Assembly (NCBI GenBank): GCA_964106645.2
Contig: OZ067043.1
Source of the DNA: Podarcis pityusensis
Lineage: Eukaryota
Length of the DNA stretch: 64,000 nt
Strand: one strand, 5' to 3'
Part shown: piece after piece, positions 20,975 through 51,900 of the stretch
Layout: each line of letters begins with the position of its first letter
How positions within the stretch are numbered: position 1 is the stretch's first letter
Made by a program: the position numbers and the translations under genes
Notes under the pieces: generated by a model
Seen by the model: the letters and a program-made list of their open reading frames with translations, nothing else
The model's database searches: none
What the model was told of the DNA's origin: nothing

Positions 20975-33542
<12,568 letters not shown>

Positions 33543-34844
33543 GGTTCCTGGAAGAGAGAAATTAGAAAATATCTGTGATCCTAAACCTTGAAGCAAGAAA
33601 TCTACACTACATGATGGCTTAAATTTAAATAAAGCAGCCAGTTTAAAAATAAACAAAAGCTTTGCAAAATGCAATATGCCCAAACTGGAAGCTACAAGTG
33701 TAAAAGGCCCCAATGTTGCAAAACTTCCTGTTTTTCTACATAAGTTATGAACAAGGAGGAAAGAAATGTGATAACTATTAAGTCTCTGAATGACATTTGC
33801 AGGTTGCATTACAAATGTCTCTTATTACTTTCATCTCCAGTCAATTAAAATTCTACCAACATGTTTTAAACCAATAATAGTACGTATTTCCATGTAAAAG
33901 TATTTACAAACATAGCACAAGCTTCATTTATTTCCTTGGAACTTGCTTGTATTGAGTAAGAGTCAATATCTGCAGGGCTGTCAACAAAGAGTGAGCAAAT
34001 TTGTTTCTGTTGCTCTAGAGCCTAGGGAAAGGGAATATTGATTACACTTTGGAAAGAAAGAATGTCCTGACCATATGAACTGCTAGACAGTGGAACAGGC
34101 TACCACACAAGGTAAAGAACTGTTGGAGGTTTCTAAGTACAAGATGGATGGCCACCTCGTTATTGCAGATAACTAGAGTAGCAGATAATATACCTAAGTA
34201 GAAGTGGACTACATGGTTTTTAATCCTTCCAACTAAGATTCTAATCAGTAATTTTCAGTTCAAATTTACTTGGAGATAAGTCCCAGTGATTTCAATGGAG
34301 CTTACCTCTAAGCAAGTGTTCATAGACTACAGCCCAAGCAGTATTTTTCCTTGGATGACAGCAGAAACAAAAGTTTCTGTTCCTATTTTCTTCACAGTGT
34401 AACTAGCCGACCTAGAACCAATTAGCTCTTACACATTTGCTTTAGTTAACAATTGTAACTGCTTTTAAAATCTTCCCAATTTCATCAGAACTTCTAACCA
34501 AACCAAGGTTATATAAAATAATTCTTTGAACTAATTAGAGTATTTTGCTTGCATGGCTCTTTGAATGCAATCGTTTTACGGTGCACTCCCGTCGAAGAAA
34601 AGTTGTACATAATATAAATTATCTCTGTGATACTAGGCAACTGCAGCTCCTTTTTGCCAGTTGAAATTTCCCATTAAAAAAATTATCATCATCCCCAGGG
34701 ACCAGAGTGTCACTATGGCCCATCTGCAGTGTACCTAGCCTATCATGCCAGTTACAGGATCATGCTGCATGATACAGCCATGGTGTCCTACAAAAGTTTG
34801 TTATGGGTGTTAAGGGTTGTTAGGAAAACCCCTGTTCCTCTCAA

Positions 34845-39447: not shown

Positions 39448-39453
39448 TTTATT
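39448..39453 (-). terminator. Candidate PTH4 polyadenylation signal (AATAAA)
   Basis: Minus-strand AATAAA about 460 nt after the PTH4 stop codon. Confidence 0.35.
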
Positions 39454-39912
39454 ATAACTTAAACCCACATTGCTAAAGGGGAACAGTAGAAAACAGGCAC
39501 AAAAGACCTCAAGTAATTATATGGGTGGTGGAAGCAGGAAAGGAGCATAAGGGACAAAGAGTGAATACTTTCCACATACCCCAGCAGAATCTGCATGCAC
39601 AAACACACAAATACCTCAATAATATTGTTCAACAAATGCAAAGGAGTGAAGCAGCAATAATAATATATAGCCCCTGGCAATATTGCTAACAGTTATAAAA
39701 TATCTGTGCTATCTAGAAGGGAAAATTTTAAGCCCTGCACATTCCTGTTTAATAATCGGAATAAGGGGGAAATGTTCTGGCCTTTCAACAATGTGAAGGA
39801 GTAGTAAATGGCACAAACGCACATTTTCTTTGTTAACCAACTTTTCTTTTGATCTCCCTCAGTGTATATATCTCAAGTAGCAGATGGACTGCAATAGGTT
39901 CGGTCAGGAAAT

Positions 39913-41568
39913 CTATGTCTGGGTGCTGAGATTTCTTTTGCCATCTTGATCTCCACCTTGAAATATGTCAGAAAGATCCTGATTGCCCTTTACATTCTTT
40001 AGATACTGCAACACATTTGTTTTCCTGAGGACAGCAACAGGCTCTTCCTTCTCCATCAATCCCAGCAGCAGTTGCTTCATCATTTCTAGAGACTCTTCTC
40101 TGCCAGTTCCATCAGAGAGATCGGAGAGGTCTTGGTTCTTTGGTGAGGTCCACACAATGTGTGCCTGCGGGATGTCCCTGCCCACGGCTGTGTGCACTCC
40201 TCCCATGGCTTGGTGGAGCCAAATCAGTCGGTTTAACTCTTCACGGAGATTTCCTTTATTATGCAAGAACTGGAATTCTGCCACTCCTCTCTTACTGAAA
40301 TGTGAAAAAGCCAGTACTGTGCTTGAGAAGCAGAAACACATTCACAACAAAGCAAGAAAATATTCGGGTTACAAACACTTCAGGTTACAGCCTCCACTAA
40401 CCCAGAAGTAGTACCTCAGGTTAAGAACTTTATTTCAGGATGAGAACAGAAATTGCATGCCGGTGGTGCGGCAGCAGCAGGAGGCCCCATTAGGTAAAGT
40501 ACCTCAGGTTAAGAACGGACCTTTGGAACAAATTAAGTTCATAACCAGAGGTACCACTGTATTTGTGTGTGTGCTCCATCTTTGTAATAAAGTTGTGGTG
40601 TACTCCCTGCTCCATAAACTGGGCTAGGAGAAAAGTGCCTGGACTGATTGAATGCAGGGAGGTAAAAAAAGGGGGGGGGGAGTCATATTTCCTGCTCTAT
40701 GCACCTATTTTCATGTCAAGACTACCACATACTTTGGCCTGTTTCAGACATAATGGGAAACCATGATTTCCTACTCCATGAAAGAGCCTGTATGAGTCTC
40801 AGGTTTCTAGGCATCTCCTTGGCCACAAGGAGATTGGAAGCTTCCATTTTTGAACAAGCCACAGTTCCTCTTTATGCCCAGGCTGGAGAGATTGTAGCGA
40901 GAAGTACTAACCTTATGACCAGCAGACCATGTGAGCCTGAGGTTCATGTGGGCTCACTCATGTGGTGAGCAACTGGTTTCCCATTATGTCTAAACCAGGC
41001 TAATATATGTGAACACGACAGACATGTGAATAACATATGTAGCTGTCTTCATTGTTTCTGATTTTGCTATGGATTTGTGCTTTGACGTGTTAAAAGAGGT
41101 AGCTCTCTCGCCCTTATCATCACTATCTAGGAATGAACAGAAGATCACTTTATGGTTTTCGGAACCATCTTGGAAAGCTCTAACAACAAGAAGACTTTGC
41201 CTTTTCCCTTTGCTATCTTGTGACTTTCAGTACAGGATAATCTTGTTTTTAAAAGCACCTTCCAAATGTGTCACATTTTAAAGAAAAATCATTTTAAAAA
41301 TTACAAACGATGCTAAACATATGTTTGCACAGTGATCTCCTTCAGAAAAATACATTATATTGTAAAGCATTACTGCAATGTTATCATTTTGCATCCAATA
41401 GTCAACACAGTACCCCCCCCAAAAAACCCATCATAGTAAAATAAAGCTTATCAAAAATTTGACTAACAAATATTCTTACGTTTTTGTTTCTTGACATGTT
41501 GCAAACCAAACAAGAAAAAAAATGGACAAAAATGTTACCATCTGTAGATATCTTTGGGACAAAAGCAT
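39913..41568 (-). CDS. PTH4: Parathyroid hormone 4 / PTH-like peptide (PTH-L) prepro-hormone, 156 aa, 2 coding exons
   Basis: Exon 41480-41568 encodes MLLSQRYLQMVTFLSIFFLVWFATCQETK plus 2 nt (acceptor ttaatag at 41584, donor AC|gtaaga). It joins through a phase-2 intron to exon 39913-40294 (acceptor catttcag): T-KR-GVAEFQFLHNKGNLREELNRLIWLHQAMGGVHTA.... The PTH/PTHrP-conserved V2, E4, Q6, H9, G12, R20, W23, L24, V31 and H32 are present, as is the RLIWL motif typical of PTH4/PTH-L. The intron sits just before the dibasic site, as in PTH-family genes. Position next to STK38/SRSF3 matches recalled PTH4 synteny. Confidence 0.9.
40364..40560. mobile_element. Tc1/mariner (Tigger-like) MITE fragment in PTH4 intron 2
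   Basis: Ends with GAGGTACCACTG|TA (TIR plus TA target) and contains repeated GTACCTCAGGTTAAGAAC sub-terminal motifs. The left end is truncated. Confidence 0.6.
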
Positions 41569-42324
41569 CTTCTGTCTTGTAAACTATTAAACAAGATGAA
41601 ATAAGACGGACATTGAAATGCAACTTGCAGCTATAACATATTCCACTTAAATAATGGATAGTAAAATTAAACCGTAGTGGCTGATAGTAAGTATTGGCCT
41701 GAAATATATAATTTTAAAAAAAATATTATTCTTTGCCTTTTCATATTTACTGTGACAACAAAAGCCAAATAATTCCGTAGTGCATTTTATTTGTATATTA
41801 GGACACAAAAGGTTTTAATTTGAAATAGTAGAAAACCATCTTTTAAATATATATTCCAAATATTCCTGTCATAAATATATTACTGCAATCTTCACTCAGG
41901 TTAGTATAGCCTATGAAAATCAATAGCATAATATGTATATAAAATTGTTTGCTTTTGGAGGGAACAAAACAAATATTCTGATCTGAACCATAACTGGTTT
42001 TCTAGAAATATGTGAATACACAAAATACATCCTGAATGGCACAAGCCATTGGTTCAATTTTTCCAGTACTGTAATCACTTATTTGAGATATATTTGTATA
42101 GCTACATATAACCGACAATATCTTAATTAAATATTAGTTGAAATAAAATATTTAACAGTGCAACCCTATACATGTCTACTCAGAAATAAGTTCAATGGGG
42201 CTTATGTCCTGGTAAGTGTATATAGAGTTTTAAGCCCAACAGGTTAAAAATAGCAGTGGAATGTAGAGTACTTACTATTTCTTCTTGGATTGGAGTATGG
42301 TAAAGTTGATTTGGGGAGTCTTAC

Positions 42325-42365
42325 TTGTTGCTAGCAGATCTCTAGTGAGCCTCCTCCTGCAGTGA
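42325..42365 (-). other. PTH4: Predicted non-coding first exon of PTH4
   Basis: Starts about 30 nt downstream of a TATAAAA box and ends at donor CAA|gtaaga (42325), or alternatively ATA|gtaagt (42276). PTH-family genes have a short 5'UTR exon. The TSS is estimated. Confidence 0.55.
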
Positions 42366-42387
42366 CAGTGTTCGCCTTCCTAGCTTC

Positions 42388-42394
42388 TTTTATA
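42388..42394 (-). promoter_or_regulatory. TATA box of the PTH4 gene
   Basis: Minus strand reads CTATAAAAG, about 30 nt upstream of a short segment ending in consensus splice donors and about 0.8 kb upstream of the signal-peptide exon. Confidence 0.6.
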
Positions 42395-43433
42395 GTTCTG
42401 TAGCTGCACTTAACAATAGGGATGAGCTGCGCATCATGTTCTATGACTAAGATCTTTTCCTCCTTGTATAAATGAAAGATGTGCTTCTCCCAGAGACAAT
42501 CACCCTTGGACAATAAAGTTTACTATTTGGCTAGTGATTAAGACACTGGGACCTCCTGTTTTTGAAATATCTCTCATCCTGTCATTTTCATAGGATCGTA
42601 AAATCATGCTATGGAGGTTGGGATCAATAGCAAGGCTGAAGATTTGGAGACTTTTTATCACTGGGGGACTTATTCCAGCCATTACTTGCTGGATAACTTT
42701 TGATATAATTTCTGGATCAGCACCACATGTTTAAGGCAAGAATCAGCTTGATTTTTCTAGAAGGCAGCTGGAGAAGTGGAGAACTGACCATATGAACAAG
42801 GCAAGGAGGAATCTTCCTCTTCTTGACATGTTATTGTCAGATTTTGAATTGGACCAGGATTTACAACGGTGCATGGTCACAATAAGCCTTCAGTGCCATG
42901 GCTCAGCCTGGAAATATGAAGTGGGATATTAATATATCCAACTAAAAATGGAGAAACATAAATCAAACTACTTGCTCAGTAGAAATTAAAGACATACGGT
43001 ACTTCACACAGCCCACCCCAAATTTCGGGTTGATGTTTATCAGTCTTGGTTGAACTATGGCAGCCTCAATGGCAAACAAATATTCAGAATGCTCCCAGTG
43101 AAGTCTCCTGCATCCACCCAGTGTCACCAACAGTAACTTGCAAACTGACCCATAATCCCATCCACAGATCAGAAATGTGTGCAGATGGGGCATAGCTAGA
43201 GTCAGAAGATGCAGGGCTGTGAGGGCTCACCTAAATACTTTCCCAGCGGTGCTATCTCGGCAGGCCTGCTCTTCTTTGAGCTTTGATATAAGGCAGCAAC
43301 CTGCTATTCTGAACATCAGAACTGATCTTACATATGTGCCTCTCAGCTTTGCACAGAAAAAGAATTCTGCTGCCTTCATCTATCGTTTATTTGACGTTCT
43401 CAGTTTTCCCTCTTTATAGTTGTTTGTCTAGTG

Positions 43434-48953: not shown

Positions 48954-51900
48954 ATGCATCGTGATTCGTGTCCACTGGACTGCAAGGTTTATGTAGGTAA
49001 CCTTGGGAACAATGGCAACAAAACTGAATTGGAACGAGCTTTTGGCTACTATGGACCACTACGTAGTGTGTGGGTTGCTAGGAATCCCCCTGGTTTTGCT
49101 TTCGTTGAATTTGAGGACCCACGTGATGCTGCTGATGCAGTCAGAGAACTAGATGGGAGGTAAAAATTCACTTATATTTGGGTTGAGCTTATGTGTATAC
49201 TCTGATCTATTAATGTGATATGCTGCTTTGATTGAAAAGAAAATTGGTCACAAGTAGCCTGGCTTCTGTACTTGGAGATCCAAAAGAAATATAACTGATT
49301 TTCTGTGGGAGCTAGTGGGGCTGGGAAGTAATTCTTACTAACAGTCTGTTAAATTTGTGTGAAATGTAATCCTTTGCTTGTGTTAGAAGAGTTTATTTTG
49401 AGTACAGTTTAAACATGTTGCATATTATTCCTGAGTTTCTAGACTTTGCACAGCTATCAAGTTTTGGAAACACTGGTTGTGAGCTCTTGTGATTCTGAGT
49501 GCCCTGTTTCAAACATTTAATATTTTTTTTAAATGGAAATATGCTCAACATTGCAGGCTCTTAATGGCTCAGTCTGTAGCTGAATTTCACTCATGTTGAT
49601 TTAAAAACATTTTTATTTTGACATCTATAATAAGCCTGAAGCTGAATATGCGTTCTATATGATCAAAACAATTTTAAGTGCTGGCTGCTTCTTAGGAGTG
49701 AAATACTGGTCCCCAGTCTAATTTTCAGTTAAACAAAACAAAATTCGACTGACTTGGTATGGTTTTGTGTTGAAGTTTAAATAACTAGGGAAATACAGGG
49801 GCACTAGTTGAAGTGTCTGGCTTAGTTTTATTAGGCTATTAGAACTAACAACTCTTCCCTTTTTCTCTTAGAACACTTTGTGGGTGTCGTGTCAGGGTTG
49901 AACTCTCCAATGGTGAAAAACGTAGTCGGAACCGTGGTCCACCTCCCTCATGGGGTAGACGTCCTCGAGATGACTATCGTAGGAGAAGTCCTCCACCTCG
50001 CCGCAGGTATTTAGGAGCAAAGAATTTGTATAGTAATGTTTGGCAGTATTACCATTTGGCATAATAGACTTTTTTTAAAAAAGAAAAAATGCTTGTCTAT
50101 ACCTACCCAGACACAGAATTTTAAAGCATTGAATATATGTTAGAGGGATACATTGTGTTGAACACTGACTTTTATCCTTAGGTGTCTATACCAGTTGATA
50201 GTGCCCTCTAACATGGATTATCATCTTTCCTTCTGAAGTCTGTTCATCTTCTAGTCACTTTCTTTTTCTTCCCAGTACTCCAACTTGGTTTTTTTTGCTT
50301 TTCTTTACACCATTGTTGTAAACATTGCATACAACAGCTTGGCTTTTCCACCTACTTGAGATTTTTCCACTTTAGCACAATGATGCCAGGCAGGCAACTG
50401 TTTTAAAAATGCTGAAGCAATGAACAGTTGCTTAGCTAAATCTGACAATAGTAAATCTGTTGAAATAAGACCAACTTTTGAGTTATGCAGGAATAAATTT
50501 CAAAATAAAGCAGGTTTTTTACAAGTAATGCATTCTCTGACCCTGACAGATTGGTTGGGTGTTTATTAGTCGTACTTAAGGTCTTTATTTCTGCAAGGGC
50601 TGATTTTAGCCTGTTTCAGGTAAATGAAGTCCATACAAGATAAGAGAGTGAAATCTGTTCCCTTTCACTGTAGAACACAATAGGAGTATTTGTTAGCTAA
50701 TAGATGGTTGTACTGATGGCTTGTTTTTCATTTTTNNNNNNNNNNNNNNNNNNNNNNNNNNNNNNNNNNNNNNNNNNNNNNNNNNNNNNNNNNNNNNNNN
50801 NNNNNNNNNNNNNNNNNNNNNNNNNNNNNNNNNNNNNNNNNNNNNNNNNNNNNNNNNNNNNNNNNNNNNNNNNNNNNNNNNNNNNNNNNNNNNNNNNNNN
50901 NNNNNNNNNNNNNNNNNNNNNNNNNNNNNNNNNNNNNNNNNNNNNNNNNNNNNNNNNNNNNNNNNNNNNNNNNNNNNNNNNNNNNNNNNNNNNNNNNNNN
51001 NNNNNNNNNNNNNNNNNNNNNNNNNNNNNNNNNNNNNNNNNNNNNNNNNNNNNNNNNNNNNNNNNNNNNNNNNNNNNNNNNNNNNNNNNNNNNNNNNNNN
51101 NNNNNNNNNNNNNNNNNNNNNNNNNNNNNNNNNNNNNNNNNNNNNNNNNNNNNNNNNNNNNNNNNNNNNNNNNNNNNNNNNNNNNNNNNNNNNNNNNNNN
51201 NNNNNNNNNNNNNNNNNNNNNNNNNNNNNNNNNNNNNNNNNNNNNNNNNNNNNNNNNNNNNNNNNNNNNNNNNNNNNNNNNNNGAGTAAGCGGCTTATAA
51301 GTAATTACTTTTTCTCAATCAAAGGCTGGCTGTGCATAATTTCGTGGTAACATACATATGTTGCTTGAGCAAAACTTTTAAGGGTGTTAAGGAAACTTAA
51401 TATAAGAAACTAAACTGCAGTATATTTGCATGCGAGATGGCAAACTACATTTAATTGCTAACTTAGTTCTTCCTTGCAAAAATCTGCCAACTCCTTTCAC
51501 CTTTAAACTGTTTTACTAACAGTTTTCGGAACTTAAAACAATTACTTTGGGGTTAAACTGGGCAAACTAAGGTTCTTTAGACTAAACACACTATGACATT
51601 TTAAATTTTTACATTCACAAATATGCAGTTCTAATGGTGTTTAATGGCTTTGTCACGGTGTGCGTTAGTCTTTGACTTGGTACCTTGTGTCCTGTTGCGG
51701 ACTTTTACCTTGCATGGGTTCCAAAATACTGGTTTATACCAATTTTGGGACTACTTGTGGGACATTAGTATAGTGTTCTAGGCAGTGGATTTAGTTGAGA
51801 TGGAAGTGCTGCATTGGACAGGTTTGCTTATGACATGGTGTTAGTTAAAGCAAACTCATGGTTGGAAGCGTGCTGATCACACTTGAGTTTTTAATGCCTG

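Follow-up and report, generated by a model that had tools for sequence, protein, structure and literature searches.

Parathyroid hormone 4 (PTH4, also called PTH-L) belongs to the parathyroid hormone (PTH) family and is found across the vertebrates, with placental mammals as the exception (Pinheiro et al. 2010, PMC3009671). Its precursor is encoded by two exons that hold the pre-pro region and the mature peptide (PMC3009671, PMC4354418), and an intron right before the Lys-Arg cleavage site is the PTH-type gene structure (PMC4354418). Linkage of the gene to SRSF3, formerly called SFRS3, has been reported for Xenopus and for chicken, where both lie on chromosome 26 (Pinheiro et al. 2010, PMC3009671), and the copy lost from eutherians has been placed on human chromosome 6 (PMC5640766). 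In chicken, PTH-L(1-34) causes calcium movement across epithelia and is an agonist of PTH1R, with a half-maximal effective concentration (EC50) of 7.7 nM, whereas it barely activates PTH3R (PMC3483286). In zebrafish, hypothalamic neurons produce Pth4, which controls bone mineral and phosphate (reviewed in PMC5640766) and is reported to be under Runx2 regulation (PMC5640766). Here, we describe a candidate PTH4 gene in a 64,000-nucleotide stretch of DNA from the lacertid lizard Podarcis pityusensis (assembly GCA_964106645.2, contig OZ067043.1), referred to throughout, at its full length, as the window. An initial annotation of the window had proposed an intact PTH4 gene hidden between STK38 and SRSF3.

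Our comparative analysis indicates that this gene is, very probably, the intact lacertid orthologue of PTH4, with precursor processing and receptor action that can be predicted from its sequence. The product of its third exon matches the Pfam Parathyroid family (PF01279) at 36.3 bits, above the curated cut-off of 22 bits (E=9.6e-9), over residues 1-58 of the product, in keeping with the family assignment first proposed. The best matches of the exon are squamate proteins named ‘parathyroid hormone 4-like’, at 60-71% identity (E about 1e-38 to 4e-50), and a Logan contig product that is 95% identical to the window exon is also among the matches. NCBI carries this name for Elgaria multicarinata, Varanus komodoensis, Hemicordylus capensis, Ahaetulla prasina and Sceloporus undulatus, at least five squamates, so the suggestion of the initial annotation that squamate orthologues may be unnamed does not hold. 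Orthologues from Anolis, Phrynocephalus, Naja, Sphaerodactylus and Lerista stand under other names. A profile built from the squamate sequences recovered 200 proteins; among the best 120 of the 200, almost all are PTH4, from squamates, alligator, turtles, more than 100 birds, axolotl, lungfish and coelacanth.

The proposed orthology rests on descent, as read from the tree and from synteny. An exhaustive profile search gave 115 representatives, PTH and PTHLH included, ten of them labelled from source names, and a maximum-likelihood tree was built from 42 sequences (outgroup labels from source names; PTH2/TIP39 and zebrafish not among them). The window pairs with a second lacertid (support 100/100), falls within squamate PTH4 (100/100) and then within sauropsid PTH4 (97/98), and a branch supported at 99/99 separates the PTH4 side from PTH and PTHLH. 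The grouping put forward in the initial annotation, with PTH4 and apart from PTH and PTHLH, is therefore the one recovered. Teleost Pth4-type sequences, labelled by sequence type, also lie on the PTH4 side. Like the window, chicken and Xenopus PTH-L share the tetrapod PTH4 clade (represented by bird PTH4s in the tree), the two-exon precursor and the SFRS3/SRSF3 linkage. With 0.38 changes per column, the stem leading to the lacertids is a long one.

The neighbouring genes are those expected of a PTH-L locus. The first coding exon of SRSF3 is divergent from PTH4 and lies about 6.5 kb upstream of its promoter, which reproduces the linkage described in chicken and Xenopus. Downstream lies an NDR-family kinase gene, whose second exon in the window (30357-30656) matches CBK1, NDR and STK38, and whose N-terminal sequence we take to be that of STK38 rather than STK38L. 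In Elgaria, a 465-residue gene product with Pkinase and Pkinase_C domains is likewise encoded about 7 kb past the PTH4-like gene, on the same strand. The placement between STK38 and SRSF3 was thus correctly read at the outset, and it is the expected location. The SRSF3 gene body contains a run of N at about 50720-51290.

The gene itself shows PTH-type structure, with two coding exons and an intron just before the Lys-Arg site (Table 1). Read on the minus strand, exon 2 follows the acceptor ttaatAG (AG at 41585-41584), has its ATG at 41568-41566 with an A at position -3, and ends in the donor AC/GTAAGA after 41480; exon 3 follows the acceptor tttcAG (AG at 40296-40295) and closes with the stop TAG at 39915-39913. 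The coding parts sum to 89 + 382 = 471 nucleotides (nt), or 156 codons plus stop, with a split codon AC/T for Thr. Because exons 2 and 3 join in phase, the predicted precursor is a prepro-hormone of 156 amino acids; the two exons were searched separately as queries, and their join rests on the splice phase read from the sequence. In all of these points (TATA box, signal-peptide exon, 382-nt exon in phase, 156 residues) splice sites and translations agree with the initial annotation. The window holds 47 open reading frames (ORFs) of at least 90 amino acids, so the exon-3 frame by itself says little; the tblastn search found one PTH4 copy in the 64-kb window.

Two other acceptors for exon 3 were considered and rejected. 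The upstream AG of the Elgaria type is out of frame in the window and reaches a stop, and a second upstream AG, ending at 40323-40322, is in frame, but the proximal acceptor is intact and matches both Hemicordylus DNA and the short Anolis protein. The exon-3 boundary is the same in Hemicordylus, the second lacertid (contig L002) and a further squamate contig.

The predicted precursor begins with a signal peptide whose Kyte-Doolittle hydrophobic core spans residues 10-24 and for which ATC/QET, after residue 25, is the sole cleavage site permitted by the (-3,-1) rule. Its sequence is conserved in other PTH4 precursors, and tblastn places the signal-peptide exon, at 76-81% identity, where the PTH4 genes of Elgaria and Hemicordylus begin. 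The Lys-Arg pair lies seven residues past the predicted signal cleavage, and both residues (K38, R39) are invariant in an alignment of 12 PTH4s that runs from coelacanth, lungfish and amphibians to birds, turtles, alligator and squamates, the window included. By analogy with the PTH family, the 156-residue precursor would enter the secretory pathway, lose its 25-residue signal peptide and be cut by a pro-hormone convertase after Lys-Arg, which would free a hormone of 124 residues. Its N-terminal helix (residues 1-34) would then bind the extracellular domain of a class-B PTH receptor of the PTH1R/PTH3R type through Arg20, Trp23 and Leu24, and residues 1-14 would activate the receptor and raise cyclic AMP. 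The terms functional and secreted, used for this gene in the initial annotation, are ones that we infer.

Other squamate PTH4s share the two-coding-exon structure, the signal peptide, the TATA promoter and, in Elgaria, the downstream kinase gene. They also share a conserved C-terminal two thirds, within an exon 3 that has 60-71% identity overall.

The C-terminal tail (39934-40026), with a Gly-Lys-Arg near the C-terminus, is conserved among squamates, and its Lys-Arg is kept in the aligned bird, turtle and alligator PTH4s. A middle helix-like stretch (KQLLLG...) can be recognised back to coelacanth and lungfish. This conservation of tail and middle suggests constraint on PTH4 outside residues 1-34. 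Just past the 1-34 segment (40177-40188, mature residues 34-37), Arg37 is invariant in the 12 aligned PTH4s, and birds, alligator and turtle have Ser or Ala at position 36. An ancient origin thus follows for the Arg, and the Gly required for amidation is not general.

Where the lacertid gene departs from its relatives is the segment predicted to bind and activate the receptor. Across the 12-sequence alignment, the start of mature PTH4 is nearly fixed as AVTEHQ...D.GR...QGLKRLMWL. Within residues 1-34, the window retains Val2, Glu4, Gln6, Gly12, Arg20, Leu21, Trp23 and Leu24, the last four of which are invariant in all 12 sequences. In PTH bound to PTH1R, Arg20, Trp/Phe23 and Leu24 dock the 15-34 helix on the receptor extracellular domain. 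The changes in the window include Gly1, Ala3, Phe5, Asn10, Asn13 and Glu16-Glu17. Bird PTH4s keep the start AVTEHQ.MHDKGR, whereas the window does not; the 1-34 framework of zebrafish Pth4, RL.WL...HTA, is the same as that of the window.

The replacements are concentrated in this segment and on one branch. Relative to Elgaria, 16 of 34 residues are replaced in the window within 1-34 versus 18 of 90 in the rest of the hormone (Fisher p=0.006), and relative to Hemicordylus the count within 1-34 is also 16 of 34. Elgaria and Hemicordylus differ from each other at three of 34 residues in the segment and at 15 of 88 in the rest; together with a further squamate contig, they differ mutually at 3-5 of 34. 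The window and the second lacertid have no replacement among the 34 residues and three among the remaining 90.

Several observations weigh against reading the gene as an intact PTH4 hormone gene. At least 90% of the 12 aligned PTH4s agree at Ala1, His5, Asp10, Gln16 and Lys19, and the window departs from the consensus at each. By parsimony, the lacertid stem carries about 20 non-synonymous and eight synonymous changes in residues 1-34, and the ratio of non-synonymous to synonymous proportions (pN/pS) is 0.72, near neutral; a period of relaxed constraint therefore also fits. A 2015 review (PMC4354418) ascribed an ‘MHD’ motif at mature residues 8-10 to every PTH-L peptide studied by that time, and the window has Leu8-His9-Asn10 instead. 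Among the sequencing runs that contain the stretch, none is on record as RNA, and the squamate Logan proteins are all genomic read-throughs of the intron rather than spliced products.

The motif carries less weight than its description implies. Other aligned squamates have Leu-Asn-Asp at residues 8-10, with the exceptions of a gecko (Leu-His-Asp) and Sceloporus (Met-Ser-Asp). Since ‘MHD’ was described from few fish, frog and chicken sequences and is absent from squamate PTH4-like proteins, it is better considered a frequent trait than a defining one. As to expression, the four runs that we examined give contigs that are continuous through the introns, as DNA would be, and show no splice joints, the listed joints lying inside or between repeats; they are uninformative.

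The alternative that best survives these data, and one that we consider unlikely, is that lacertids inherited a true PTH4 that has since stopped working as a hormone gene, with constraint on residues 1-34 lost, as it was ahead of the loss in placental mammals, and the frame persisting for want of time. The near-neutral stem ratio, which rises to 0.88 in residues 1-22, the excess of replacements in 1-34 over the rest of the hormone, the lack of runs recorded as RNA and the lack of an annotated full-length lacertid PTH4 in the collection searched all count in favour of such decay. The comparison between living lacertids points the other way. The two lacertids are about 9% apart at synonymous sites, and exon 3 of the second one shows seven synonymous and three non-synonymous differences (dS 0.089, dN/dS 0.12, binomial p=0.0016), with two synonymous and zero non-synonymous differences within residues 1-34. 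Its sole indel in exon 3 is one of 9 nt, in frame. The signal peptide, Lys-Arg site and Arg20/Trp23/Leu24 are intact, as are the reading frame and the two coding splice sites, and the TATA promoter has been conserved. In three related organisms, contigs also span exon 3 without a frameshift, and the three differences listed for one of these organisms in the 1-34 segment are all at third codon positions and synonymous. The frameshifts or stops in close relatives that the initial annotation had named as evidence against a working gene were thus seen neither in L002 nor in these three. PTH4 exon 3 looks constrained between the two lacertids, in the manner of purifying selection.

Positive selection on the lacertid stem was considered and rejected. 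As pN/pS does not exceed 1 and shows no significant difference between the segment and the remainder of the protein (Fisher p=0.13), we do not claim adaptive evolution. The stem data are compatible with a phase of relaxed constraint or with an adaptive burst, with constraint renewed afterwards in either case. Given that 16 of 34 residues appear to have been replaced on the lacertid stem and then left unchanged in two lacertids, the potency, receptor preference or signalling bias of lacertid PTH4 may differ from that of other PTH4s. Anolis has PTH1R, PTH2R and PTH3R (PMC3483286). A bolder proposal, which we raise only tentatively and rate as the less probable option, is that lacertid PTH4 has been re-tuned as a ligand instead of drifting, with changed preference or bias among these three receptors and perhaps with receptor co-evolution.

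The sequences of solved structure nearest to the 1-34 segment of the window are the PTH1R ligands PTHrP(1-36) and PTH(1-34) (PDB 7vvj, 8flr, 8haf, 7vvk and others). These belong to different paralogues, yet they align with the window without gaps (E=0.005 for PTHrP) and have in common with it Val2, Glu4, Gln6, Leu8, His9, Lys11, Gly12, Arg20, Leu24 and the His-Thr-Ala end. Gly1, Ala3, Phe5 and Trp23 of the window correspond to Ala1, Ser3, His5 and Phe23 in PTHrP; human PTH has Trp23. Although this resemblance, with PTHrP(1-36) as the nearest solved sequence, a PTH-like His9-Asn10, a PTHrP-like Lys11-Gly12 and the plain name ‘Parathyroid hormone’ of the Anolis orthologue in UniProt (G1KSU8), could suggest a PTH or PTHLH gene mislabelled as PTH4, such an identity is extremely improbable and is refuted by tree and synteny, since the 99/99 branch sets the PTH4 side apart with the window deep in squamate PTH4, the PTH4-specific C-terminal part is conserved over its full length, and SRSF3 linkage is that of PTH-L and not of PTH (ARNTL/BTBD10) or PTHrP (MRPS35) (PMC3009671).

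Overall, then, orthology to PTH4 is the reading we adopt, and its novelty is limited in a specific way. PTH4 is known as a kind, and its orthologue is already named in several squamates; the surprise implied in the initial annotation is not supported, given the range already published for PTH-L, vertebrate-wide but for placental mammals (PMC3009671). The description of the gene as hidden holds only in a narrow sense, as a collection of 5.8 billion proteins contains no full-length lacertid PTH4. Because its presence is expected and squamate orthologues carry the name, the present work corrects an annotation gap in lacertids and adds no new hormone. The entry for Podarcis muralis, A0A670IHM8 (Ensembl/UniProt), is a partial model of 109 amino acids that has no canonical signal-peptide exon and exits exon 3 half-way; it has 60 residues in common with the window exon, 97% identical (two differences), and looks like a mis-modelled PTH4. 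What is new is the predicted full-length lacertid model, missing from the collection searched, and the apparent lacertid-specific rewriting of residues 1-34. In the literature searched on PTH4/PTH-L in lizards, squamates and reptiles, we found no functional study of squamate PTH4.

The rewriting could matter as a natural experiment on the 1-34 pharmacophore of a class-B G protein-coupled receptor ligand, conserved from coelacanth to squamates, rewritten in one lizard family and constant in two of its members. Positions 1 and 5, both changed in the window, are known sites at which PTH/PTHrP analogues can be shifted in signalling bias and receptor selectivity. To PTH-receptor pharmacology, lacertid PTH4(1-34) might therefore be of use as an informative natural analogue, and it could provide a test case of co-evolution between ligand and receptor.

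Table 1. Features of the PTH4 locus in the Podarcis pityusensis window.
Feature	Position	Strand	Basis
Conserved proximal promoter block, upstream of TATA box	42395..42582	-	blastn and alignment
TATA box TATAAAA	42388..42394	-	direct reading of minus strand
Exon 1, 5' untranslated region (UTR) only, ATG-free	42276..42365	-	start placed ~25-30 nt past TATA box
Exon 2, 15 nt of 5' UTR and 89 coding nt (signal peptide, start of pro-peptide)	41480..41583	-	
Predicted 25-residue signal peptide, cleavage past Ala-Thr-Cys	41494..41568	-	hydropathy and (-3,-1) rule
Intron 2, GT...AG	40295..41479	-	minus-strand reading
Very high-copy interspersed repeat in intron 2	~40364-40565		contig depth
Exon 3, coding part: last base of Thr codon, Lys-Arg site, 124-residue mature PTH4, stop	39913..40294	-	
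Predicted Lys-Arg pro-hormone cleavage site, right after intron 2	40288..40293	-	alignment
Mature residues 1-34, predicted receptor-binding and -activating segment	40186..40287	-	alignments, replacement counts
Putative ATTAAA, poly(A)-signal-like hexamer, 160 nt past PTH4 stop	39748..39753	-	
Putative AATAAA, canonical poly(A) signal, 460 nt past PTH4 stop	39448..39453	-	
First coding exon of SRSF3, divergent from PTH4	48954..49160	+	ORF; Pfam RRM_1, 63.2 bits
First coding exon of downstream NDR-family (STK38-type) kinase gene	33411..33545	-	PDB match to STK38-like N-terminus, E=7.7e-6

The promoter is conserved beyond the TATA box. By blastn, the region reaching ~230 bp upstream of it is 74-76% identical, over 250-300 bp, to regions of Elgaria (contig L001) and Hemicordylus (contig L003) that sit about 0.8-1.1 kb upstream of their ATG exons. 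The alignment of these three squamates contains long invariant runs, and the TATA motif CTATAAAAGAAGCT is invariant in all of them, which argues for a maintained promoter. Invariant motifs of the ATTGT type (SOX-like) and a TAAT core were noted within the promoter block.

For exon 1, the short UTR exon of the initial annotation stands, and its donor at 42325 is doubtful. The GT of that donor (42325/42324, AA/GTAAGA) occurs only in the window; the corresponding dinucleotide in Elgaria and Hemicordylus is GG. An alternative donor at 42276/42275, ATA/GTAAGTACT, is common to all three. The choice between 42325 and 42276 touches the 5' UTR only.

The exon-3 acceptor has diverged elsewhere among squamates. 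Elgaria has lost the proximal acceptor (tttcAG to tttcAA; L001:14480-14580 versus window 40294-40364), and the NCBI model of its gene takes instead an AG that lies 22 nt further upstream; the seven pro-peptide residues that this adds account for the 166-residue length of the model. The 166-residue protein of Varanus shows the same extension, at the protein level only. In contrast, the window, Hemicordylus and the second lacertid keep the proximal acceptor, and the Anolis protein is the short form. The shift in Elgaria leaves the mature hormone unchanged.

Elsewhere in the tree, two ranid frog proteins named ‘parathyroid hormone’ (P0136 and P0155) have a long branch (1.58), and the 99/99 split puts them with PTH4 and apart from PTH; the Rana temporaria copy carries the name ‘parathyroid hormone-like’. 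The former name may therefore be a mislabel of frog PTH-L.

Finally, intron 2 harbors the interspersed repeat listed in Table 1, at which summed contig depth reaches 10^4-10^5 in four lizard runs compared with about 5-10 in the flanking sequence. An ARAGORN search for a tRNA-like head in it was negative, and a 19-mer recurs in inverted copies at 40410, 40498 and 40537. The element is probably a squamate short interspersed nuclear element (SINE) or one resembling a miniature inverted-repeat transposable element (MITE). A stretch of intron 1 (42075-42296) gives a weaker high-copy signal.

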